A DNA stretch of 63,864 bases, the filler included, from Klebsormidium nitens (lineage: Eukaryota > Plantae > Klebsormidiophyceae), in assembly GCA_000708835.1 (NCBI GenBank). It is 6 parts of 6 records of this genome, joined end to end, with 100 filler letters (N's around TTAATTAATTAA, not from the genome) between each part and the next. Parts side by side here need not be neighbours in the genome. Positions count along the whole stretch, not along the records: positions 1 to 24,561 come from DF237850.1; 5 more parts are not named here. The stretch is one strand, 5' to 3'. The position numbers and the translations under genes are program-made. How positions within the stretch are numbered: position 1 is the first letter of the stretch; every line of letters starts with the position of its first letter. Positions 3,084-22,700 of this stretch are shown here, in pieces. The notes beneath the pieces were generated by a model. It did not search any database. It was not told the DNA's origin and saw only the letters and a program-made list of their open reading frames with translations.

Positions 3084-4737
3084 CAACCAACGCAAGAAGA
3101 TGGATTGCGTTGAAATTCACGCAATGAATGGATGTAGTTTCTCGAACGTTCACCATCTGCGTCAAACATAGGTGGTGGGAATAGAAAAAGAGGAGCCTTC
3201 GACACGAGTACTATAACATAGCTTACACGATCTTCGAATTCGGGATCAGACAAACAATTGATTCATGTATGCCACTGGGAGCCTATGGCCCATGTGGGTT
3301 TGGCGTTCGAAAAGAAAACATCATGCACTCATTAAGTCAAGAAGCTTGAGCTCAAGTGCATGGCAAGCTAAGCCTTCATTTGGTGAGTGTCATATCATCA
3401 AAGCCGCACATGTAGCGCAGCTATATATGTTGGGCAGCCTGCATGGATCCATGACGAGCTACACTTGAATAAATTAAACATTGCTGTGTCACACAACATA
3501 TCTCCCGCAGACGTTGGATCCAATGTTCTGTCACGCACGCACGGTAAATTATGGCTTGCACGCCTTTGGCTGCACATATCCATTCATGCGCTCGCGACCG
3601 CGTCTTGGATCTGCATCCGCCGACGGTCATGCACAATGGATTCGTACCGCGGATGTTGCTGCAACACAAGCTAGACAACTCGGCCTTTGTCAATTGCCGC
3701 ATACCAAGGAAGGCATGCGTCCAGTATGTGTACACTAGGCTAGATGCCGAGATGATTTTCATCGATGCGGGCACCTCTGACTGGCAATGCGTCAAACATG
3801 GCACGATCTTACTAATGATCTGGTGTCTTGCGTGATGATTAACTGTCTCACGCGTGCCCGTGCATCGAAAGAGGATTGAGAGTCATGGTCTATTACGTCA
3901 TCAAAGCTTTGGAGAACAGACTTCGTGTGGGCAGAAATGATCTTCTAAACACAAGCAAAAGAAGAGGACTTCTATTCAAACTTCGTATCATGTTCTCTCT
4001 AAAAAGATATCCAGGCGTTCTCAAGAGCAATCTCATCAAGATACCTCAAACCTGGCGCTGGGTACACGGCCCGTGTCAAAACAAGTGTTGCAAACAAGGT
4101 GGTCTGGTGTGCATGATGTTAAATCTCTACTAGCTAGGATAAGGTACTTGACAAATCGTGCCGTAAGGTCATCTGGGCTCCAATAAGTGATCAATGCATG
4201 CGGTCAACACTAGTGGCTAACGAGAACAGGAGTACTCGACTAAGTAGTGCAATCAGAGCGCGATCAGGCGAGCCGTCTGGTTTTTGGGAGCTGACCTAGC
4301 CCTGAACTCGACCCCCTTCGACAAGAATCACCTGGTGCTGCCTGCGAGCGGTTGAAGAAGTGTGACTACAAGCAAAAAGTTGTTTTCAATCCTCAAGTAC
4401 CCGGATCCCTGACAATTAAACCTCTTCTTTGGAGATAGAGACCAAATAGATGAAGATCCGTTTGCGAGTAAGCAATTAAAACTTGTACAGAGACAACAAG
4501 TAATCATCTTTTTGATACACCTTGCTCAGTTTCATGAATCAAGTGTGCGAATCAAGCATCCCCGACCTGATTCCAACATACTAGATCAACAATGCTGGAC
4601 TTGAAGAGCCATATATTGCAAGAGGCCTCATAGCCAGCTTGAACGCTCTCCTTGAATAAAGTGGGTAGGTTGCAAGGGCGCTGAGGTCCACGATTGCTGG
4701 ATTTCTTGGCTGAAAGGTCGCCACTCTCCATCTCACC

Positions 4738-7700
4738 TTACAGCTTCAGTGCAACACGCGCGCCGACAAAAGCCCCAAGAACGAGTGCCGCGCCAAGTAA
4801 AACTTTCCGCACATGCCTCGGCTCCTGCAAAGAAGAGGACACAGCTTGAGAATACATCGCACCTCCAAATGATTGGTTCTGTGAACTGACGATATGTAAC
4901 AGAATCCAAGCGCAAACCCTTCGTTCTGAAACACTCACAGAAGTGGATTGGCATGCAGATTCACCCTACCATGCTCCTCATCCAATCATGCGGACGGCAG
5001 ACTTCGAAAGTGAATGACCTGAGGCACTCAAGAAGCTGGAATGCTTCTAAAGACATTTTGATCTGAACAAAGACGCCAGTACTCGATACACAATGCTTCC
5101 AGCTCTAGAAAGACTCAGCCACAAGCCTAGGCCTGGTTTCCTCCCTAACCTCTGGTGGCTGGTGCTCGAGTGCCTTGTCCTCTTTGCGCAGTATGGTGGA
5201 CGGCTCAGCTTCAGAAGCGTTTCCTGAAGTGAGGTGTGTAGGTTGTTGACCTAAGGTGTCGTCTGTAATATTGTCACCGTCAGCCACTCGCAAGCGACTC
5301 TCCTGTGCAACCTCGATTCCGCTCCGATCTTTGGTTTCCTCGAAAGATAACCTTCGATGGGGCGTTTGCTCTAGCGCTGTGGAGGACAGGGTCTGGTTTA
5401 ATTCTGTGCTAATCCGCTCCCCGCTCGACCGCCCCGCTTGACGCTCTGCATCTGTCTCCGCTGGTTTTCCGCAACCCAACGCCCCCACACTCGCCGCTGC
5501 TTTCCCCTCATCTTGATAACGGCTCCCTTCGATGGCTCCAAACGGAGTGCCGGGATCGAGCGGTGAGAGGGGTGACACTTGACCAATGGTTGAGGGAGTC
5601 TGCTGGCACGGCGCTTCAGCTAAGCCTTTCGGAGAACTGGGCCCCGAGCCAAATTGGAGTTCGTGCGAAAAGGTGGACTGAGTAGAGGTGGTGTTGATAG
5701 AAGAGGTTGAGTGGGGATCGGTGGCCTCCGACACTGAAGAGCTGCTCCCTTCAACCCCGAGCGTAGTAGGACTGAAGCCCGTCTCATATTTGCCGCCCTG
5801 AAAAGGATTTTTAGTCTTCATAGCATTCTTTGCAGGGAAGTGGTCTTCAAACGAAAGGCGGAGCAGACTGCCGTTCAAGGGTCATTAAGAACGCTGCTCC
5901 TGTCCTGCTCTGAATCATGAGCACAAAGTGCAGCACAGCTGCTCAGAATAGAAGTGAGGTAAACAGCAACATAGTCTCTTTTTAATAATCTCTTTTTGAC
6001 GGAAAACACTAAGGTCAGGGAGGACCACAGTAAGTCCAGGCACTACTACTCCGCTAAAGGAGCAGCAACAGGATTCTTCTTGGAAGGTCGGTGAAGCCAA
6101 CGGCACGTCCAGTCAAAGGCTGCTTTGCAGCACAAACTGACATATAATCCTCACCTCGGAACTGCCAAGAGATGGGGGAAAAGCCTTCAGTCTCTTCGAA
6201 GAAGAGGAATGCAGAAAAGCCTGCAAGTATAGCGAGATAGATCATGGAAAGGTAGAAAATCCACGAGTGTTTACAAACGTCTTTGTTGGACTGTCTGCTT
6301 GACACCTTAAGGTTTTCCAATAGCCTCAAACCCTTCTGCTGCAAAGCATGGATAGAGCTGGAGAGGAAAGCTCTGTAAAGTCCTACATAATGAAACAAGG
6401 ATGACAAAGCTTCATTTACGGGCCTTGCTCTGCACCCGGCAAGATCGATTCTGCTTGTTGAAGTCAATTGATTGCATTCCGTCAGTCTGGAAATCCCACC
6501 TTTGCTCGCAGGGGGGTGAATGCCTTCACAATCTCGTCTAGACTGGGGCGCTCTGTCGGTTCCCGCTGAAGGCAGCGCTCGATGAGCTGGAGCACAGTGT
6601 CACGATCCCCCTCCTCTGTCTCCGTGTATATGTCCTGAGGCACCTCAGGAAGCTCCCCCCTCCGGCCCACCCTGTACTTAACCTGGCGCTGTTGGAAGCC
6701 GTGGAAAGGAGGCCAGCCTGTAGCCATTTCAATGAGGATGCACCCAAACCCGTAGATGTCGGAGCGAAGATCCTTCACGCCCTGCAAAACATGCCATGCA
6801 GGTAAGCCGCAAGACAGCACTTTCCCCATCAAGCATAGTTAGACATTCAATCACCTTGAGCAGGCAGTTCCAAACTCCAACCGCTGCCGGCAACTTCACA
6901 ATCAAGGATGCAAGGATTGCCGATATGCACACAGGCAATAAGCAATACCTGCTTATCATGAGCACCATACCTCAAAAGGTAAAAGTCTTTCAACAACAAA
7001 GCTAAAGACGTCATTATAAGCTTCCTTTGAGAGCGAGCCGAGCTGAGCCATTCCTTGATTACCTTCCATGCCTCAGGAGCCATGTAGAAATGCGTCCCCG
7101 CCACAGAGACTCTGCTTGTGTCCTGCGCTTGTAAGCGACTTGAAAGCCCTAGGTCTATGATGAAGGGTTCGCTGGCGCCCAGCTTGAACATGATGTTCTG
7201 CAGACAGGAATTGTCCTCCAGCTCCGCTTGATGCAAGATCAGGCAAAGGGTTCAACAAAGTCGTTTCGAAGCAGAAAGACCACGAATGCTCCAACTTTCA
7301 TTGCATAAGAGCTTCAGAGAAGCCTTGCCGGAGCACACTCGTATAGTCAGCTGCTTCCAACCCCGTGCATGAGAGGGCCACAAGGATTCACTCCCTATTA
7401 TTAATTACCTGTTGAAAGATGGGCACAGACATATCAATCTCAAATGTGGACGTAGTGAGCCTTCTGTTTACCTCAGGCTTGATGTCTCTCATGAGGATCT
7501 TTTCATGATGCAGGCCGTTGAGAGCGTCTGCTACTGCCAACCCAACAGAGCAGAAGTCCAACCAGGGCAAGGGTTGGCCGCCAATCTTGTCCTTCAAAGT
7601 TCCTCCATCGTAGTAGTCCATGACGATCCCCACATCCTTTTTATCACTGGAACAAGCACAAGCTTCGCCTTTTGTAGCGTCTGTCACTACCACCAACGAG

Positions 7701-8379
7701 ATTGATCTTTTTGATCTTTTTCCAAGCACACAGCAGCCCCAGCATCTCCAGTGCACAACCTTCTGTTGCAGGGATACAGAAAGAATGCGGAAGCAGCCGG
7801 AGAAGCTCAGAAACATAGCATGCTACAAGCAGAAACAACACCCACCGGTAGATGCCATGGAGCATGCAGATTCGATGGCACTGGCTTCTTGCATGCTTCA
7901 GATTGAGAACTTCTGACAGGAAGGCTTTGACTTCTTGGCCTGTTCTGTTCAAACCATCCTTGAACAGCTTGAGCCCCACGGTGGTGCCACTGGGCAACCC
8001 CACTCCTTTCCTGGAGGAATCAAAGAAATAATAGGTGCTTTCAAGTGTCCACAGGATCTTGTCAAAACCAAACAGCATAAGGCTCTTCAGAAGGGTTGAT
8101 CACATGAAGATTGACACATTGCCCATTAGCAGCGGACTGATGCCATGGATACTGATTATATCTGAACAGCTCCACAATGGAGGTCAAGTTTCTTACAAAC
8201 ATGCTGACAATATGCCAATTCGGCTTGACTTACTTGACCAGTGTTACTGCTTTGTAGACCACCGTCTCAAAGCCTGGCCTCACGGAAACCTCCTCCTCCA
8301 ATCTCAGGTCAATCTCACCAAATAATGGCAGATCTTCGGTGACCTTATTGAACTCTTCAAGCCACAGTGGTTGGTCCAT
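4738..8379 (-). CDS. Multi-exon Ser/Thr (TKL-like) protein kinase with long S/T/E/P-rich tail and C-terminal transmembrane helix
   Basis: ATG at 8379 (MDQPLWLEEF...). Exons encode VGLKLFK, AFLSEV, VMDYYDGG, MRDIKPE|NIMF, IDLG, YMAPEAW, SDIYGFGCILIEM and RPSLDEI, joined by GT-AG introns. Low-complexity exon 5105-5878; terminal VLLGAALVLGAFVGARVALKL. The tail exon structure is approximate. Confidence 0.85.
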
Positions 8380-8586
8380 GTGACTTGAAGCAGCTCTCTG
8401 CCCCGACTTTGCACAAACAATCAGAACTTTTGGAAGACCGAAGAGTAGAAGGCCTGCATAATTGCAATCAGATACTTCTGCAGGTGCAATGGGCAGCCTT
8501 GCTCTTGAGAGTAGTACTCAACTCAGACACCTCTTTCGTCGATGAGCGAAGATGATGATGATGATGCCTCCGAAGTCAACTTCAAG

Positions 8587-8613
8587 ATCAATCAATCAAT
8601 CAATCAATCAATC
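8587..8613. repeat. (ATCA)n microsatellite in the intergenic region of the divergent kinase pair
   Basis: About 6.75 perfect ATCA units. Confidence 0.95.
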
Positions 8614-9196
8614 CTTTAAAGTCCCGTAGGAGCCATGGGTGGCTCATGAGACAAAATCTGAATACGGTATGTTCTCAATCCTAAATGCGTCTCGAATAAG
8701 CAACCCTAGCAACCTTTCGCTGATTACTTTGCCCTATGAAGATGCGTAGACTGCGCGGAGGATGCTCTCCGATGTATGCATGCATGCATGTTTGGGCTGC
8801 TGACAATGACCTAGGGGTCATCCAGTGTTCCACTTTGCCTTTGGGTGAAGTCGCATGCAAGAAAAGGCTCGAAGTTGGAACTGGAGGTCGGAGCCCTACC
8901 TGCTAGATGCAATATTATTCTGGTAACTCTAGCGAGGATTTAGGGCAGCGTGGGATAAAATAAGACGCCCGGGAGACGGGTAGGGTTGGCCCGGTGGTTA
9001 GGGGGGTACGGGGTGCCGAGCAAGTGTTTATTCTAGGTTAGGGTTATGATCCTTGTCACCCGGGCGATTCATATCCTGTTCCACGCTGCCCTTATTCCAT
9101 GCTAGAGTATAAATACTGAACACTGTCGTGATTTCCCTTCTCAACACGGTTCTACGGTATACCAACACAAAAAGATTCAAGGCGACGGAGATTAGA

Positions 9197-12100
9197 ATGC
9201 ATTCTATCGACGCCATGGCGTCGATTCTGGGAGTCGTCACGGGTGTCATTGGGATTGTCGACTTTGCCATCAAGCAGGTGACAAAGATCTCCGAGCTGGT
9301 CAAGGAGCCCAAGAAAACAATTCGCAAATGCAAGGAGTTCGCGGATGAGCTGGTCCTTACAGAACCTCTGCTGCAATACATCAAGGAGTATTTCAGAGGA
9401 GTCCCGGCCGATAGCGCAACCATGGGCATCCTGGTGATTCTTTCTCAAGCGATCTGGGATGCCAGAGTCACAATCGAGGAGGTCCATCATCTTTCGACCT
9501 GGAAAAGATATCGCCGGGCAAAGGCCATTGGGGCGAACCTTGAGCGCTGCATAATCCGTGAGAATCCCTATCACATGGATCCTTCCATCCAAGAAACACT
9601 GCACAGATTGCAGCCTGGTCTGTTTTTTGAAGTTCACCATAATCTGCTGATCAGGCAAGGCTGTTAACGTCTGGATCCGAAGTCTGCCCAGATGAGAGCA
9701 CCAAGAAGCGCTGGATGGAGCTTATTCTTGTATACAGGATTACACCTTCAGTCACAGAGCTGTAATCTGGTCTGAGCCCTCTCTAATTCCGCTGTCGCCT
9801 GCTTCCAGCACATCATGAAGGTGCTTGAAGCTGCATTGATCTGCCCCCCGTGGTGATTTTATGTGCAGAGTATCGCGCCGCTCTGGATCGCCTGGTGCTC
9901 CTGCAGACCTTCAGGACGATGATCTCTGTTGATGCGCTGCGTCAGCTCAACGGCAGCAAGGAGAAGTTGAAAGCTCTCGAGAAGGAAGTGAAGAGCATTC
10001 ATTCTGAGCTGGCGGAAGTCAGCAGCTCTTTCTCAGCAATGCCTGATGTGTTGGCTGATTCAGCACCTCGGTCAGGTCAGATTAAGGAGAGGCTACAACA
10101 AACCCAAACTGTTGCGGAGCTGCAAGCCAAAGTCAAGGAAATACAGCAGAACCCCAGACTTGTGAAGGCGCTACGAGTGCTGGGCTTGACTGACGAGAAT
10201 TCATCTGCCGAGTTGGAAAAGCTCCAGCAGTTGCTGCGGGACGAGAAGCTCCGTGAGTTTGATGATGAGTATTTGGAGCCTGTAGAGGATGCAAACAAGC
10301 TGGTGTTCAGGAGCAAAGACACGGAATTTCAACGGTTCAGATTGAAGAAAAGGTAAGGTGCTTACTTGCACTCCTTCCACACAGTCGGTTTCAAGCCATC
10401 GCTCTTTGGGATGGTGGAGGTGCCAGCCAAAGTCTTCCCACACCATCTGTTGTCTTGGTATTGGCATCTTTAAATGCCACTGAAACCAGAGGTAGTGAAG
10501 GTCAACCCTTGACAACCTTCAAATCCATGCTGGTTGGAGAAAGGATAGGCAAGTCAAGCAACAGTGAGCTAAATGCAAGCCATCTGCAAGCCAAGCCAAG
10601 TGCAAGCTATTGGGCCCCTTTCTGCTGTCCATAGCCCACAGCTTTGGCCTGACTTGTAGCGTTTCTCAACCTCAATGATGTGAAGATGTGCTACATGTCT
10701 GCTGACAGACTGCATGCTTCTCTCTAGAGGTTGTGATGCGAATCCCTTGGCTTACCTGGCCATGTTGTTGCTTGATGGAAACTAATCGACACCGGATTGT
10801 GTGTGCAGTGTGGATCTCTTGACCGAGGGCACTCTGGTCATGGTGAAGTTCTTCCTGGGGGCTGCTACAAATGCAAGGGGCGACGAACTGCGGAACTTTC
10901 GGATCCAAGTGCAATATCTACAATGGGTCGCATCTCAAGGCAACACCTGCAAAATTCTTGGTTTTTACAGGTGGGTGCCTTCTTGAAAGCAATATTCCCA
11001 GTTCAGGAGTTCACAAGTGTGGGGCAACCTTTATTTCTGCCCAAGCTATCTTCGGATGAGGTCTTCAACATGTGTTTGCTTGCTGACAATACAGTAATGC
11101 ACACTACCCTTGATGAGGTTTCCGTACTTGTAGATTCATCCGGTACCTGAAAACAGTTCTCACCATTTCAAGACAGGCCGTTGCACTTATTCTTTTGGGG
11201 CCTATTGCATGTGCCTGTTATAGAAAGGATGAACGCTAGACTGGACTTGATCTCTGGCACTGAATTGGCTGTTGACAGGAGGAGGCACGACTTCGGCATT
11301 GTGATGAAGAACTACGAGGGCTTTACCCTGGAGAGTCGCATCCGCGAGGGAAAGCTCCAGAGATCCGAGTACCTACATGTGGCCTACCTCTTGGCTCAGA
11401 CAGTGGACGTGCTGCACAATGCAGGCTTGATCATCGGCGACCTTTCTCCGCGGGTGAGACTCGGTCTCTAAGCCAAAGACTGTCCTTTTAGACCATTTTG
11501 CATGCATCCCCTGGTTGATGCTTTTCCCAAGCCAAAGACTTCAAGGTCTTGCAAGCGTTGACCCTGACAATCTGCATTTTTGGGCGTTTAGTGCAGCTTC
11601 AAATCAGTCTCAAGCAAGTATTGAGTTGCTGGGCTGAGGCGATGGCCCTCCCCTTTGCAGGGCATCTTTCTGGAATTCAACATGCGGCCTGTGATTGCCG
11701 ACTTTGGCCTGTCCAGAGTAGCCGCCATGTCGTTCATCAGCTTCAGTGTTGCGACTGCTGAGGAGAAGGACGTGGAGCCCTACCTAGCACCTGAAGTATG
11801 GATGGTGAGTGGGCTTGAAGAAAGGCATTATTTTTTTCTTGGACGTGTATGCGGGATGCCACCTTCTATTGCTCGCAAGACCTTGCAGAAAATCTCCCTG
11901 CCATGATGGTCGCCTTCTTGAGGAGGATTGTCAATCTCGAATTCAAGGATCTGGATAATTTGCTTTGTTTCTGGTGCTTGACAAGTTCTCTTTCTCCTTT
12001 GTATCATGTTCTCTTTCAGCGCCCTGATCCGTGTCGTGAGTGCTTTTGCTTGTTCAAGTCCCTATGATGATTGATATTCAAGGAGGCAATGACTCTAATC

Positions 12101-12410
12101 ATGCTGATCCCAGGACCATCCAACACCGGCAAGCGACGTGTGGAGCCTAGCTTGCATTCTGGTGGAGATGATCACCGGCGTGCGGCCCCACAACCTGGTC
12201 CCCGATCTTGAGGAGTGGGTTGGCGAGGCGAAGCACTCTCCAAAGCTGCCCGCCCCTTCCGAGATAGGGCCACCTACTGGGATTGGGCCTGCTCTTCATG
12301 AGACACTGCAGGCTTGCTTCAAGCCTGATGCTGAGCAGCGTTTACGGCTCGGTGGCTCTGATGGGTTGTTGCGACGTCTTGAGATCTACCATGCAGCGGT
12401 GAGTAGTTGA
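9197..12410 (+). CDS. MLKL-like protein: N-terminal four-helix-bundle (MLKL/RPW8/HeLo-like) domain, helical linker and C-terminal pseudokinase
   Basis: Exon 1: MASILGVVTGVIGIVDFAIKQVTKISEL...ELVLTEPLLQYIKEY...LVILSQAIWDARVTIEEV...WKRYRRAKAIGANLERC. Exon 2 (9867-10352) is helical/coiled-coil. Kinase exons: LVMVKFF, GIVMKNYEG, IIGDLSPR|GIFL, IADFGLSR, YLAPEVW, DVWSLACILVEM. Small 3' exons may follow (e.g. 12620-12643). Confidence 0.75.
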
Positions 12411-14059
12411 CGCTCAATTCAACCCCTACAAGACTGGTTGACTGGAAGGTTTCTTTGGTGCATTACTGGGAAAAGCATGAGCCAATGCTGCCTTGAGTGT
12501 TTGCGCTATGTAGCAATCTGAGTTACGTAGTGTTCCAAGCGAAGCCTGATCCAAAAATCAGCATGCTGCGTACCAACACTCCAACTATCATTGATGTTCA
12601 AAGTTATTGTGCTTGACAGGAGGTGAGCGGAAGGCCTGAGCAGGTGAGTATTGTTGCGGACACGTAGACTTGACGTTCTGTGTGTATAAAGGACAAATCA
12701 GGTTGTAGTCTGTGTTTGTCGAGTATCAAATTCTTTTGCCCTTGGAGCTTCATATTGCCTTGATGATTCATGGATAGGTGCATAAAGAGGTCTACACATG
12801 AATCAGCCTGTTCTTGGCAAGTAGCAGTTTCTCACAGGTGTTGAAGGTGTCTTGTTGCGCTAAGGCTTCAAGGTTTGGTTTGGGACAAGAGGTTGCCTTT
12901 CCCTCCGCCCGGGGCTTGCATTGAAAGGTGGCTCGCTTGCTTCACTCTTGCAGCTGTGAACCTGAAGAAGAGCTTGACACAGTTGTCTAACCATATTCAA
13001 TCACGTCTGAGCATTTGCAATAAGGTGTACGCCAGGAAATTTTTTATTCTTTTTTTTTCTTTTTTCCGTCGAGTCTTTTTAATGTGGAGATCATGCTTTT
13101 TTGGAACTCCCAGGCCTATGGAAACTTCAGGCTAGGCATCTAAGAAGTGATTTATATGTTATCTCAAGGAATGTTGGTTTGAAGTTGTTCAAAAAGTCTC
13201 TAAGATATTGTAGTGGCTCAACTGACCGCTCAAGTCTAGCTGTTTGCTCTAATCTGTTCATATACGTGTGCATGTTTGAGATATTAGACAGATTTTCACA
13301 TGGCAAGCAGCCATAGCAGGCTACAATGTCGACCTTTTAACATGACGGCAGCTATAGCAAGCTGCATCATGTATCAACCATTGTCACACCCCCGAGCAGG
13401 GCTCTTCGGTGCGCTGTCCGAAATATACTTGTGTGTAGATCTCGTCGCTTTGACACGATGACCAGCGCCGAGTTGGTGATTGCACTCCTCATCCTCTCCG
13501 ACGTAACTTTAGCACTTGCATGTGATAAGGAACCGGAGTGGAGTGAAAATTGGTTGACGTTGTCATGATAGGGTTCGCCGCTAGCTCCTTGATACTCAAT
13601 AGTACACGGTACTCGCATGCATGTACGAACCGTTGGACTCAGGGCTTCAAGCCATAAGCATTGATCTTCAAATGAATCGTCATGTCGATTGCTTGCCGCA
13701 AATTAAAGCTTCATTTGACGAGCGCGCATCTGATACCACTCCCAAGGGCTTGCCAACCATAGCCACGTCATGCATTAGTCTAGCGGCGACAGATTGATGA
13801 TCAGCTTGCACTTTACACGCATACTGTTCAACAACCAGCAGCAGCCAAGCAACTCGATCTGATATGATCAATAGCCCTTTAAAGCTGGGCCGGGCCATGC
13901 TCCTACACCTTCGAAGGCTGCCCATAAGATACCCCAGTCTCGAGCAGCTTGGATAGCACGGGGGACAGCTGCCTGAGGTCCGCAAACTGCCCGTCCGAGA
14001 GTGTCACCGGCTCAAAGAGACGCCGCGCCAGCAAGAGCCACAGGATCACGCTCTGGAGG

Positions 14060-16222: not shown

Positions 16223-18805
16223 GATTTCATATTGGCTGGAATGCCTTTTTGGAAGAGCCTTATTGACAAACATGGCGAGCCTGACACTTTGAAAGCGACG
16301 ACTCCTAGTGGCGGTTTTCACTACTACTTTTCGTTTTCGGGCACCCTCAAAGATGGACTGAGGTCGGGAAAGAACTTCGTTGGTGTGGACGTCGATGGTC
16401 AAGTCTAAGGGATTGATGGCCGCGGCGAAGGAGGAATCGCATTCGCTCCACGAAGTTCGCTTGGTGAGGGTATAAAATACGAATGGAATGTCTCGCCGGA
16501 GAGGATCAATATTTCGACCGCTCCGACATGGGTGATCGAATTGATAAACGAGTGTGCCAGACGAGCTGGTCGTAACGGACAGATAAACACTCAAGGTGCA
16601 TTTCAAGCAATGCAAAGCTCAGAACTCGAAAAGCATGACGAGTTGCTTCTGCATTCTTCCTTTGCAGACGAAGCAGATTTGAACAAAGATTCAATAAACA
16701 CCCGAGACGCACGGGCATATGAGAAAACAATAGCAGATGCAATGATGAAGTTGCTGAGGGATGCTGGGTTGGACGAGAATGTTCAGTTCTCCGGAAAGGT
16801 CTCTTCTCGTGGCCCGTTTGGTTCACTATATTCCTTCGTCTGCAAAGGCCCTCGAATGTGCATTCATGGCCATTGCCACAACGGATCCAACAACTTAACA
16901 TTGATAAAAAGAGGCTGGGTCGTGCTCTATCGATGCTTTGGATCTGAGTGTTCGGAGAAGCCGCTTGTAGAAGTTGGAACTCTCAACCTCGCAGACTCAT
17001 TGCTAGATGCGAATCCTACAAAGTTGCATCCGACATTTGACCACTCGGTGTTTCCTAACAATTGCAAGGTGTTATCCGAGATAGAACGCCAATATTATGT
17101 GGATCTCATCAAACGCAACGTGATGCAACGCTATCGAGGGATGGCTGCCATTTTCAGTGTGATCTATGCCGTTGATGGACGCATACTTGCCGAAGGCAAA
17201 AACTTCCGGTATTGGAACTCACGACGCTGGCTGTCAGATGGTTCCTATCATGTGCAATCAGTTTTCTCGAGCCACATTTCGAGAATATTGAAATGGTATG
17301 AGAATCTCCGATTGACGGCATTCAAGCACGAAGTCTGGAAGCTTACGAAGGAATCTGGAAAATGGGGTTGCATAGCAGAAGCTTCGGAATACGCACTTCC
17401 AGAATGGGCAACCCGACCACAGAGCGAAGAAGAGAAGAAAGCATGCCGGCGAGCGTGGGAGCTCGTCTCAACCACATTACCTTTCCCTTCGAAAGGTGAC
17501 TCTACATGTCAGCTCATAGATCTGACACGTGGCTCTGAAGTGCGTATCTGTCTTGAACACGTTCTCAATTCGTTACAGATCCGGGAGGAACTGGATGCTC
17601 TGATGGACCAAGTCAACCCGTACCTATTTGCATGTGCAAACGGTACGCTGGAAACTACGACTGGACAATTGCTTGCACCACATCCTGCACAGCTGTGCTC
17701 GCGAGCTTCAAAGGTAGCCTTTCGTGGAATGCCTCAAGGCGAATCCCGCTTCGCTTCTTTTCTGTTGGATTGCTTCAACAACGACTGACAGGTTCTTGAT
17801 TGGTATAAGATGTATCTCGAATACTGCATGACGGCCGACACCAGCGAACAGATCTTTCTAGTAAAGCAAGGTGAGGGGAGCAACGGAAAAACACTCACGA
17901 AGATAGCATCCTTTGAGATCTTTGGTTCGTATGCTGTTGTGATGAGCAAGGATGTCATCATCGAAGCAGGTGGCAAGCGGTCCGCTGGTTCAGCTTCGTC
18001 CCACCTCATTGCGTTAAAGGGAGCAAGGCTGGCCGAATCGGATGAGTCAAACGAAAAGTCCGTTCTGAACGAAGCAACAGTCAAAGAGTACTCCGGAGGC
18101 GGCTCCGTTACAGCAAGAGAACTTCAAGGTAAGCAAGAGACCTTCATGGTGACGCATAAAGCAATTTTGAACACCAATTACAAGCCCGTTATGGAGAACG
18201 TATCTTTTAGTCTCATACGGCGTATGGCGCTTCTTCCAATGACTGTGGCTTTCAAGTCGGCTGAAAAAGTCAATCCGAGAAAATCCAGAGAGAAGCCCAA
18301 AGATCCTACCTTGGAAGCTTACTTGAAGTCTGATGAAGGTCGAGAGGATGGACTTTCGTGGATCGCAGCGGGGGCAAAGCGCTACTTCGACTTGAAACGG
18401 GCGAATCCTGGCGTTCTGGTCCTTGAAAAGCGCCCGAAGGCTATGGAAGACGCCCTGAAAGCGTATGTCAACGACAGCGATATTGGCAAACGATTCATCG
18501 AAGAATGCTGCGAGTTCGAAGAGTTGCAACAAGGAGCACGTGCGAAGTGGCACTTGGCACTAGGCGAAAGGCTGGGTGACGCGTTCCGGACTTGGATCAG
18601 AGAAGAAGAGTTATCGAGTTCACTCACCGCTCAAGCACTGAAGAAACGAGTCGTACTATATGCTGATGGCACCAATCATACAGTTGAAGATGGCCGTTTT
18701 ACAGACAAGACAGTGCAAGACAAAGGCCAATTCAAAGGCCTTAGCGGGGTGCGTCTAAAGGCTGCCCTTTGCAATCAAGGCAGTGGATGTGGGTGGGGAG
18801 CTTGA
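16223..18805 (+). pseudogene. Primase-polymerase (PrimPol/Prim-Pol) + Zn finger + D5-like SF3 helicase of viral/MGE type, two in-frame stops
   Basis: One frame: TTPSGGFHYYF...GQV*GIDGRGEGGIAFAP...APTWVIEL (Prim-Pol domain, TAA at 16406-16408); CIHGHCHNGSNN...YRCFGSEC (Zn finger); YLFACANGTL (D5_N); NND*QVLDW (TGA at 17786-17788); Walker A GEGSNGKT; LKGARLAESDE; ILNTNYKP; RRM. Intronless. Confidence 0.88.
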
Positions 18806-19783: not shown

Positions 19784-22700
19784 TTACACATTGATTACAA
19801 GGAAACGGACCGCCTCCGTCCACAAATTCGCTCTACCGGCTATCAGGATCTTTGCGTTGTCGACCCGTGTGAGTTCCGAGTTTCGTCCGCTGATAAGATT
19901 AGCTAATATTACCATGAAGGCTTCTAGTCCGGAGTACCAGCCGAGCGTGGGCCTAAACTAACCAGGAAAGAATTGCAGCTTTCGACCGCAGAAGTATTGA
20001 CCCAGCGCACCGCGTCGTAGTAATCTGATACAGAAGACGGAAATAGATTAGCCTGGTAAATGCTCATAGCGATTGCGGTTGGCATGCAGAGTCAGCGATA
20101 ATAAGCGTTTGCGGGACAATGCAAAGTTGGTGTGCACGCTTGGGTGTCAGTCAAACGTGTTGCTGTGGTGTTGGAAGGCTGAGGCTTACCGGGGTTGAAC
20201 GAGGGTCCACACTTGTGGGCCTCAGCTCCCATGCGCTGGAAGTGAAACCTGCAGATAACACGTTGACGGTTAGATTTCGACCAAGCGCCTTTATTACCCA
20301 ACGCCCTTTTCTCGGAGCCAAGTATGCATCTTCCAAAACCAGGTTGGAGGGCCAGTGGGGGGCACCCTATGCAGCATGTCAAGGGACGGCGGGTATGTCA
20401 AAAGCACATGAGATCCAGTGCGGCTCAATGGCAAAAGTTGCAGGGCCGAGTCGAAGCTCTGAAGTCATCAAATCCAAAGAGGTTGAAAGAACGTACCTGT
20501 CGACCAGGAACCGGACGTCGGCGAAGAAAGCCGGTTCTCGCCTCATGCAATACGATTGAAGCTTGCACGCGTTGTCATAGAACATGTACCGGGGGAGGTT
20601 CCGTCGATCCAGTCGAGTGTAGAGCACGGTGAACGGATCGCGAGGTGACTCGCCACGGAGCATCGCGTGAAAACCGTAGATCACACGGTGCGGGCAACAA
20701 AAGACGAACCCGCCCTTGGTATGATTTTGCAGTCGCTTCGCGGACTTCGATCCCCCCTTGGAGGCCACCTCCGCGTCAAACCTGCCCACCGTGAGCCCGC
20801 TCTTGCACCGGTGCTCTTCGCTGCCCTCGATCGAGCGGCCTAGCTCGTCCTCGAAGGGCTTATATTGGGGAAGGGGGCGCTTCTGTTCCCACCCTGGCAG
20901 AGGGTAGCAACCGAGCACGCGCTGCTCCTTGCAGAAGGAGTGCTCTAGGGGAAGGGCTCCGCATGGTTCACCGTCCGGATTCAAGCCCAGCCGCTCGTTC
21001 AAGAGCTCCGTCTCAGGTACGTTGAGCGGGTACAACGCCGTAGAGGGCGCTGTCAAGCTCTCGACACCGGGGAGCAGGGCATTTGCTCGCGTCTCCCAGA
21101 ACTCGACGGCCTGCAGACAATCTGCGGTTCGGGTCCACGGGCGCTCCACGAAGTTGCGTGCTGCCCAGACGCAGTAGTCGAGACCCTCGATAGCGGACAA
21201 CGGCCAGCCAGCTCGTCCCACCCCGAGCCCGACAGCACCTCGGCCAAAGAGGGTCAGCCGATAGAGATGGTGCAACGCTGGGGTGAAATACCAGGGGAAA
21301 ACGAATCCGAAGTGGTCTAGCAACCGCCCCAGAATGGGGCGTGCTCAGCGAGGATCGCCTTATCATCTAGGTTGGCAACTCCCCCTAGGAGTAGCTTCCT
21401 GACCACGGCCAGAGCCTGCTTATGCTGAATCAGATTGCTGTCATCGGAGACCGACTGTGGCGTGCCGAACCCGTAGAGTAGCTCCGCCCATTTTGCGGGG
21501 CATCGCGGTGGTCGTAAAGGGGAAGCTCGCAGGGCCTCCGTCTTGATCCCCTCTAGGAGCGCCATCATTGCACGGTTCTTCGAACGGATCTGCCCAAACT
21601 GGTCAAGGAGAAGGCGCCGCCGCTCGAAGAAAAGCACTGGGTCAGCCTCTTCGTCGACGGGGTTCGGCACGAATTCTGAGGCCACCTGCACGTCCTCGCG
21701 GTCGAGTGCGGCCTGCAACTTGGAGATGAGGCGGCTAGAGACAGGAGCGTTGTCCATGAAGGTAGTTGGCCTACTACCTAATTGTACATTCAAGGCGAGC
21801 AATTGTACGGTTCCCAAGAGACAGCCTAGATCGGACGGTTGTGAATCCGGGAACAAATCGTTTTCCAGATATCAAAAATGCTTAAGTATTGGAATCAATT
21901 TTTGTTCCCGATTCGGAGGGGTCTACGAAATCCAGTCACGCCGTGCACGCGATCCTACCAGCCTCGTTGGACTAGCTTCAAGTCAGCTCACCAGCAATTC
22001 GTCGAACTCCACGTTGCTCAGCTTGGCTCCTAGATCAGGGTCGTCAGGATGATGCTGGCTGAAGCGCGCGATCAATGCACGCAGCTCCGGTTGGTGCACC
22101 AAGCGCCGCTTTAAACCTCCTCCACCCAGGGCGGCAGCACAGAAGTTCACCCCCGGCTCCATGAGCTTCACGACATTCACCCCCTCGGCGTCTTGACTCG
22201 GTGCCGTAAACGGTCGCAATTGCGCCGCGCTGGACCCAGCGAGCCCCCCCTTTTGTCGCCCGCCGTCGGCACAAGCCAGCCCGGCGATGCCGTCGCAGAG
22301 AAGTACCTCCGGGTGGGGCCCGCAGATGCTACAACATTCGAGAATGGAGCGTCCACATAGCTTGAAGAAGCCGAGACTCGCCCTCCGCCAGGTCCGTTGG
22401 ACACAGGCTTGGCGCTAGGTGAGTAGAACTGGCGGACGGCGTTCTTGGCCTCGATAAGGGCGTTACAAGCAGAACCGGTGCCTTGCACGCATCGCAGCAA
22501 GAGTTGGCAAGCCGCTTGTGTGACGATGATGCTTCTAGTCCAGGCGTACAAACCCAATGCCTCTCCGTTGAAGTGCACCGTGTGCTTCTCCGGACAAGTG
22601 CAGCAGTAGATGCGAACTTTCACCTGCACGCAAAAGTTCACATATTGACTAAGCAAGATCTACCTCAAGCGTGGGCCATCGGACAAGAAGCAAAACAAGA

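Follow-up and report, generated by a model that had tools for sequence, protein, structure and literature searches.

Contig DF237850.1 (24,561 bp) of the Klebsormidium nitens genome assembly GCA_000708835.1 carries two protein kinase genes arranged head to head, one of which encodes a protein that begins with a strongly hydrophobic helix and ends in a kinase-like domain bereft of several catalytic residues. The contig fills positions 1 to 24,561 of the 63,864-nucleotide stretch of DNA analyzed here, hereafter the window, and all coordinates refer to that stretch. The gene of interest spans 9215–12959 on the plus strand in eight exons. Its product, P0001, is a 540-residue protein whose public record, found by a phmmer search with exon 1, reads ‘Protein kinase-like domain containing protein [Klebsormidium nitens]’. 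Architectures that join a helical bundle to a kinase or pseudokinase are known from vertebrates, seed plants, and fungi (10.1101/681015; PMC12881547); such executioners may reflect one ancient design or repeated reinvention. The literature that we searched holds no report of such an architecture in algae. An earlier reading of the locus, made from the DNA letters alone and called here the sequence-only reading, had proposed an algal protein of MLKL architecture, and the host is indeed a streptophyte alga of the class Klebsormidiophyceae (Streptophyta). Our best explanation, for and against which the scales hang about level, is that P0001 has an MLKL-like layout, consisting of a HeLo-like bundle, a brace, and a degraded kinase, and that this layout was probably made within its own lineage.

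Gene Model and Product

When the DNA is read through, the six main exons show canonical AG/GT borders and consistent phases, and neither a stop nor a frameshift interrupts their ~1.6 kb of coding sequence. Their conceptual product equals residues 1–531 of P0001 letter for letter; whole-protein analyses were run on this database protein, and the other analyses exon by exon. Exon 1 (9215–9557, on the plus strand like all the others) encodes residues 1–114, comprising α1 (~4–29), α2, α3, and the start of α4 of a putative HeLo-like four-helix bundle. Exon 2 (9869–10352; residues 115–275) completes α4, supplies about four brace or coiled-coil helices, and closes with a β1–β2 segment devoid of Gly (259–275). 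Exon 3 (10809–10970; residues 276–329) contains β3 with Lys289 in a VMVK motif, followed by αC in which Gln309 replaces the Glu, and exon 4 (11279–11453; residues 330–388) runs from β5 into the catalytic loop, ending in I382-G383-D384-L-S386-P-R388. Exon 5 (11661–11804; residues 389–436) opens with Gly389 in place of the Mg-binding Asn and continues through D402-F-G and a Ser/Thr-rich activation loop (406–430) to the APE motif at 431–433. Exon 6 (12114–12398; residues 437–531) forms the kinase C-lobe with its DVWSLA motif and subdomain XI Arg512, and on its own matches Pfam Pkinase at an E value of 1.7e-5. The open reading frame (ORF) of exon 1 reaches the frame of exon 2 only through this exact splice, and the predicted helix α4 runs continuously across the junction in an AlphaFold2 (AF2) model of low confidence.

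The two ends of the gene are less settled than its body. Two annotated micro-exons (12620–12643 and 12954–12959, plus strand) supply the last nine residues of P0001 and are dubious; reading through the donor at 12399 would instead lead to a stop at 12408–12410. The sequence-only reading had drawn the gene from 9197 to 12410. Its start codon is in frame with the annotated one at 9215 and gives way to it, while its stop at 12410 stands as an alternative to the annotated splice at 12398. The upstream ATG, 18 nucleotides (nt) before the annotated start, would prepend MHSIDA to the hydrophobic helix, and the choice between the two codons matters because the extreme N-terminus is the functional element of such domains. 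A 16-nt exon at 12020–12035 was considered and ruled out: it breaks the frame, and the direct junction from 11804 to 12114 gives a normal APE-to-DVWS spacing and agrees with P0001. As far as the DNA and its annotation can tell, the gene model is sound, and every sequence feature listed in the sequence-only reading is present.

The Kinase-Like Domain and Its Head-to-Head Neighbor

The C-terminal half of P0001 belongs to the protein kinase superfamily. The Pfam models PF07714 (E 2e-18, residues 284–514) and PF00069 (E 2.6e-18) both match, with both lobes covered as expected of the eukaryotic protein kinase (ePK) fold, and since the spliced product reaches an E value of 2e-18, the kinase match is beyond chance. 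Congruent with this, 954 PDB kinase sequences match at E ≤ 1e-3. The state of each motif was read from an alignment to PDB kinases (MAPK, RAF) and 14 retrieved kinases. Retained are the β3 Lys (Lys289, VMVK), the catalytic Asp384, D402-F-G, A431-P-E, the DVWS motif, and the subdomain XI Arg512. Lost are the Gly-rich loop, with no Gly in 259–278 where relatives have GxGxxG; the αC Glu, now Gln309; the His and Arg of the HRD motif, which reads I382-G383-D384; the catalytic-loop Lys, replaced by Ser386; and the Mg-binding Asn, replaced by Gly389. The sequence-only reading had called the retained Lys, DFG, and APE, the missing Gly-rich loop, and the four losses in HRDLKPxN, all of them correctly; the αC Glu (Q309) is to be added to its list. 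The catalytic loop, L-I-I-G-D-L-S-P-R-G (380–389), is degenerate as that reading had it, but not fully dead, since Asp384 is kept and Arg388 stands at the +4 position, which tyrosine kinases (HRDLAARN) use in place of the catalytic-loop Lys.

Whether this domain is called a pseudokinase turns on the definition. The strict Manning-type rule asks for loss of the β3 Lys, the catalytic Asp, or the DFG Asp, and Lys289, Asp384, and Asp402 are all present. Under the extended definition, which looks to a degraded active site, the absence of Gly in 259–278 together with Q309, S386, and G389 places P0001 among the pseudokinases. The earlier label therefore holds for the damaged site and fails for the strict class. 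Judged by its residues, the Mg-ATP site is badly degraded without being that of a pseudokinase by the strict Lys/Asp/Asp rule, and catalysis has presumably been lost. Human MLKL reads HGK and GFE at the corresponding motifs and thus lacks two Asp residues, the catalytic one and that of DFG, which P0001 keeps.

The kinase half is also very divergent. In a word-based search it drew 55 matches, of which the best outside relatives, mostly bacterial Ser/Thr kinases, reach E 1e-10 at ~30% identity; none of the 55 was a relative better than E 1e-10, and none carried an MLKL-type N-domain or was a plant MLKL, the search being an insensitive one. Among PDB sequences the top matches were MAPK, RAF, and PknB, at E values of 1e-12 to 1e-8 (best 60 of 954). 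Going by the word-based search and these best 60 of 954 PDB matches, the kinase half is not especially close to MLKL or to any one plant family. A metagenomic kinase, P0006 (654 residues, also bearing an FGE-sulfatase domain), has 14 identical residues (SLACILVEMITGVR) in common with P0001 447–460 at an overall identity of ~33%; this stretch is probably a chance effect of a word-based search over 5.8 billion sequences.

A kinase much closer in gene structure lies next door. The neighboring gene (4296–8379, minus strand; 526 residues), head to head with that of P0001, retains DLG and APE as well as the αC Glu, and its catalytic loop, LMRDIKPEN, still has the Asp, Lys, and Asn. The Gly-rich loop of the neighbor is degenerate, a Ser/Thr/Pro-rich acidic tail follows the kinase domain (ORF 5105–5878), and it is without a helical N-domain. 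The kinase exons of the two genes have four or five intron positions and phases in common, with exon sizes in neighbor and P0001 gene of 165/162, 175/175, 135/144, and 282/285 nt, and the two kinase domains are 30% identical (73/244). The neighbor conforms better to the Pfam Pkinase model both in the C-lobe exon (E 2.4e-10 vs. 1.7e-5) and in the catalytic exon (1.6e-5 vs. 0.25). Because the neighbor kept the αC Glu and the catalytic-loop Lys and Asn, their loss is specific to the P0001 copy. By these sequence comparisons, the kinase half of P0001 is a degraded paralog of the adjoining kinase. Such a paralogy, with its common introns and 30% identity, favors a local, independent assembly over ancestry shared with the seed-plant MLKLs, and the layout was probably put together within the Klebsormidium lineage rather than inherited along with them. 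Convergent assembly, which the sequence-only reading had entertained as its alternative, is thus the better reading, given a kinase half derived from a local gene.

The two divergent start codons are separated by 835 bp (8380–9214), an interval that may act as a bidirectional promoter region for both genes. Within it, at ~8545–8615 and upstream of the start of the neighboring kinase, lie short tandem repeats that read (GATT)n and then (CAT)n on the minus strand.

The Helical N-Terminal Region and Its Possible Fold Family

The N-terminal half of P0001 opens with its most hydrophobic segment. Residues 1–19 (MASILGVVTGVIGIVDFAI) have a mean Kyte-Doolittle (KD) hydropathy of 2.14, the highest of any 19-mer in the protein, in agreement with the hydrophobic N-terminal helix noticed in the sequence-only reading. 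Gly residues at 6, 10, and 13 within this helix give it a Gly-zipper-like pattern, and a basic patch, WKRYRRAK, occupies residues 96–103 at the start of α4 in exon 1. Members of the HeLo/SesA/MLKL_N superfamily begin with a hydrophobic helix at their extreme N-terminus, and so does P0001. AF2, run without an alignment, places helices at 4–29, 35–59 (kinked), 67–90, and 95–136, then at 145–167, 183–218, 227–238, and 247–261, with poor predicted local distance difference test (pLDDT) scores: the whole protein reaches 40.3, exon 1 alone 47.5. On this prediction, the N-terminal region would be all-helical, some four helices making up the bundle and some four more the brace.

This region is an orphan in the collections searched. 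Exon 1, compared by phmmer with 1.84 billion representatives, had no relative besides P0001 itself; a word index of 5.8 billion proteins, queried with residues 1–280 and with exon 1 alone at E ≤ 10, returned no relative besides P0001; and neither a metagenome-contig scan nor the PDB sequences (E ≤ 10) contained a relative of the N-terminal region. One candidate relative, P0002, was rejected as a repetitive false match, and the Pfam matches of exon 2 are weak noise of the coiled-coil type.

Three weak, partly independent lines nevertheless point to the HeLo/SesA/MLKL_N group, and none points elsewhere. The first comes from Pfam, where the two best matches among 24,736 models are SesA (PF17107; E 0.032, 14.8 bits) and PigL_N (PF17111, formerly Helo_like_N; E 0.059, 13.2 bits), both aligned start to start, with residue 4–9 of P0001 placed on profile position 2–3. 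Wojciechowski et al. (bioRxiv 10.1101/2022.03.16.484565) regard the Helo_like_N and SesA profiles as related to MLKL, with whose executioner domain they align. The second comes from the features of the ESM Atlas. With residues 1–138, the first match, at 0.94 (188/256 shared), consists of Ascomycota proteins of ~136 residues, and PigL_N, SesA, and oomycete MLKL_N clusters follow at 0.88–0.90; nine of the 10 best family-carrying matches belong to the same family or clan as the best of them. With residues 1–275, all families named among the matches listed are MLKL_N, HeLo, PigL_N, or SesA. The third is the Atlas structure search with residues 1–275, whose three leading rows are all kinases with a helical N-region, among them a Streptophyta kinase cluster with MCAfunc in row 2 (template modeling (TM) score 0.44) and chordate MLKL in row 3 (TM 0.43).

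A considerable number of points weigh against the MLKL-like layout, most of them through the fold assignment on which it depends. None of the three lines is significant. Both Pfam scores fall below their cut-offs (14.8 vs. 26.3 bits for SesA, 13.2 vs. 27.2 bits for PigL_N), and the profiles of MLKL_N (PF22215), HeLo (PF14479), RPW8, and MCAfunc (PF19584), against which the sequence-only reading had wanted the N-domain compared, gave no match at E ≤ 1. Atlas feature scores of ~0.9 are reached by 4–10% of shuffled proteins, a calibration not made for parts of proteins, and the Atlas TM values lie below 0.5 and stem from a model with a pLDDT of 0.59. The AF2 model of exon 1 (pLDDT 47.5) found only generic or designed four-helix bundles in the PDB by Foldseek (FAT domains, ClyA, etc.; E > 0.4), so that this comparison, also proposed in the sequence-only reading, was carried out and gave no pointer either way; in a wide VIA-align search the same model reached Z scores of at most 10.5, again with generic bundles, where ~13 is needed for helical bundles. 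The N-domain is also without homologs in the collections searched. Beyond the fold, the exon 1–exon 2 junction is a prediction from DNA and annotation; the retained Lys289, Asp384, and Asp402, with Arg388 as a possible substitute for the lost Lys, could allow catalysis; and the gene sits on an unplaced contig of 24.5 kb that also bears virus-like and transposon-like ORFs. Weighing these against the three lines, we lean, by a modest measure, toward a HeLo-like or MLKL-type bundle for the N-domain, and hold a full functional analogy of P0001 with MLKL to be less probable than the bundle. The MLKL architecture put forward in the sequence-only reading is plausible: its order of helical N-domain, brace, and degraded kinase is seen in P0001, and its family attribution remains below significance.

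Comparison with vertebrate MLKL, the necroptosis executioner built of a four-helix bundle, a two-helix brace, and a pseudokinase, illustrates both sides. P0001 resembles it in the succession of bundle, brace, and degraded kinase-like domain and in the retained β3 Lys; residues 1–275 have the chordate MLKL cluster third among their Atlas structure neighbors (TM 0.43), and an MLKL_N-bearing cluster scores 0.89 by features. P0001 differs in its longer brace of ~4 helices, its far more hydrophobic α1, and its lack of a significant match to MLKL_N (PF22215). No RIPK3/RHIM partner is known for P0001, the neighboring kinase being the sole candidate.

A second comparison is offered by the plant coiled-coil (CC)/RPW8 domains (CC-R; ZAR1, NRG1, ADR1), four-helix bundles like the putative one of P0001, with an N-terminal helix for which membrane entry has been proposed. 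NLR-like proteins bearing CC/RPW8-like bundles have been reported from K. nitens itself (PMC10952240). In contrast to these, P0001 has no RPW8 Pfam match, its putative bundle is fused to a kinase-like domain and not to NB-ARC, and the NRG1 CC-R appears only at rank 35 with a TM of 0.30 in the Foldseek search with the exon 1 model (pLDDT 47.5).

The closest leads, sub-threshold as they are, come from the fungal HELL (PF17111) and SesA (PF17107) families, which provide the best Pfam matches of P0001 and also its nearest language-model neighbors, Ascomycota proteins of ~135–145 residues. In HELL-type domains the extreme N-terminal hydrophobic helix is the functional element, and fungal fusions to kinases or pseudokinases have been noted (PMC12881547). 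P0001 departs from these systems in having no amyloid signaling motif and no NLR partner within the window. Its host is an alga and its introns measure ~200–460 nt, which makes a fungal gene unlikely.

Proposed Mechanism, Competing Readings, and Contig Context

If P0001 does have an MLKL-like layout, its parts suggest how it might operate. Residues 1–~138 would form a HeLo-like or SesA-like four-helix bundle in which α1, hydrophobic and rich in small residues, has the capacity to span a membrane, and residues ~139–262 would form a multi-helix brace. Residues ~263–531 would then be a kinase fold that lacks several residues for efficient Mg-ATP phosphotransfer while retaining its scaffold, β3 Lys, catalytic Asp, and DFG. 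The brace and the kinase-like domain would keep the bundle inactive until a signal releases it, most likely either phosphorylation or a nucleotide-dependent switch, acting on the Ser/Thr-rich activation loop (406–430) or perhaps on the nucleotide pocket; the intact head-to-head paralog is, speculatively, a candidate upstream kinase. Once released, the protein would oligomerize through its brace, and α1 would insert into the membrane and disturb it, as in MLKL, HET-S/HELLP, and the CC/RPW8 resistosomes. The fold family, the loss of catalysis, the membrane activity, and the regulation are all inferred, and the mechanism is modeled on MLKL, plant MLKLs, and fungal HELL proteins.

Carried to its conclusion, this mechanism would make the locus a two-gene, necroptosis-like module, in which an intact kinase and its degraded paralog, the latter having captured a HeLo-like bundle, are expressed from a divergent 835-bp promoter region as an analog of RIPK3–MLKL that arose in a streptophyte alga through local duplication, independently of animals, fungi, and seed plants. 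So complete a module is improbable. What is at stake is nonetheless of general interest. A streptophyte-algal case would add a data point for the repeated modular reinvention of regulated, membrane-disrupting effectors of death and immunity, and the locus would qualify as such a point in that its N-domain looks closer to the fungal and oomycete HeLo-like/SesA type than to the plant type and its kinase half comes from the adjoining gene. It would also furnish a compact system for the conversion of a kinase fold into a regulatory switch: two genes in a culturable alga, without close paralogs in the public protein collections searched. Should the N-domain prove unrelated, all that would be left is a pair of divergent kinases specific to this lineage, and of modest interest.

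The most durable competitor of the MLKL-like layout, possible though doubtful, is a membrane-anchored or coiled-coil-scaffolded atypical kinase with no executioner role, in which the N-terminal helix is a signal anchor, a transmembrane helix, or a packing helix, the following helices are generic dimerization elements, and the kinase is either active in a noncanonical way or a scaffold. The hydropathy of residues 1–19 (KD 2.14) is transmembrane-like, as this requires, but so is that of the first helices of HeLo, SesA, and MLKL_N domains. Generic helical bundles from the structure searches and coiled-coil noise from exon 2 suit it as well, whereas every family-level lead for the N-domain falls in the HeLo/SesA/MLKL_N group. 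On the catalytic side, the presence of Lys289, Asp384, and DFG with Arg388 at +4 speaks for residual activity; the joint loss of the Gly-rich loop, the αC Glu, and the Mg-binding Asn would be unusual in an active kinase, the more so as the neighboring paralog kept the αC Glu and the Asn.

A decaying duplicate or an annotation chimera is unlikely. Here the kinase half would be a relaxed copy of the neighboring kinase, on its way to a pseudogene in a repeat-rich contig; exon 1 and the opening portion of exon 2 would then be either chance ORFs or a small gene in their own right that the gene predictor joined to it. Several facts could be so explained: the orphan status among 1.8–5.8 billion proteins and metagenome contigs, the divergence of the kinase half (best outside E 1e-10, 30% identity to its paralog), the dubious terminal micro-exons, and the D5-like primase-helicase and Kyakuja-Dileera-Zisupton (KDZ)-like ORFs on the same 24.5-kb contig. 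Decay, however, would hardly leave ~1.6 kb of coding sequence intact over six exons with canonical splice sites and matching phases, nor would it selectively remove catalytic motifs while sparing structural ones (β3 Lys, DFG, APE, DVWS, Arg512). Against a chimera speak the predicted α4, uninterrupted over the exon 1/2 junction, and the exon 1 ORF, which enters the exon 2 frame by this splice alone.

It is very improbable that P0001 belongs to the seed-plant MLKL family, as a true ortholog or an early branch, which would place plant MLKLs before land plants as the sequence-only reading had suggested. The seed-plant proteins (AtMLKL1-3) consist of a HeLo domain, a five-helix brace, a pseudokinase, and a serine-rich tail (10.1101/681015), and reports of plant MLKLs have so far been confined to seed plants. 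The likeness comprises a matching three-part layout in a streptophyte host, with a long multi-helix brace, a kinase-like domain without the canonical phosphotransfer residues, and a HeLo-type bundle that in P0001 is only predicted, to which the structural proximity of residues 1–275 to the Streptophyta MCAfunc–kinase cluster (TM 0.44, Atlas) may be added. That cluster makes MCAfunc (PF19584) a proxy for the HeLo domain of plant MLKLs, and P0001 has no MCAfunc match at E ≤ 1 and no detectable sequence relation to these proteins in either half. Consistent with this, a survey counted just two K. nitens proteins with MCAfunc and assigned both to its domain-combination type I, which is not a kinase-bearing type (PMC8049495). 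The nearest N-domain leads are fungal and oomycete in type; the serine-rich C-terminal region is absent, P0001 ending ~9–25 residues beyond its kinase domain; the kinase half, in the insensitive word-based search, had no match better than E 1e-10 and no MLKL-type N-domain among the 55; and the introns are those of an adjacent, non-MLKL kinase to which the kinase half is paralogous. An origin of plant MLKLs before land plants is accordingly without support.

Two sources outside the alga were also considered. Fungal contamination or horizontal transfer as the origin of the HeLo-like domain is unlikely in view of introns of 200–460 nt, long for a fungal gene, a guanine–cytosine (GC) content of ~50%, and a neighbor with the same gene structure. 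A viral origin of the kinase genes was rejected too: a D5-like primase-helicase lies 4 kb downstream and has no link to them.

That primase-helicase is the most conspicuous feature of the remaining contig. Two adjacent plus-strand ORFs of 418 and 331 residues at 16532–18805 are together D5-type primase-helicase-like: the first matches D5_N (E 4.9e-10), the second both a PHROG DNA primase (E 1.3e-33) and, among PDB entries, the C962R primase of African swine fever virus (ASFV; E 1.2e-12). The annotation instead places a gene of 998 residues across this interval on the opposite strand. By these matches, the ORF pair is a virus-derived or mobile-element gene within an algal contig. Further along, an ORF on the minus strand at 20379–21323 has a weak match to KDZ transposase (E 0.0086, below the cut-off), and at this ORF, from 20 kb onward, the GC content rises from ~0.43–0.48 to 0.57–0.62, as would fit a transposon or a segment of foreign composition.

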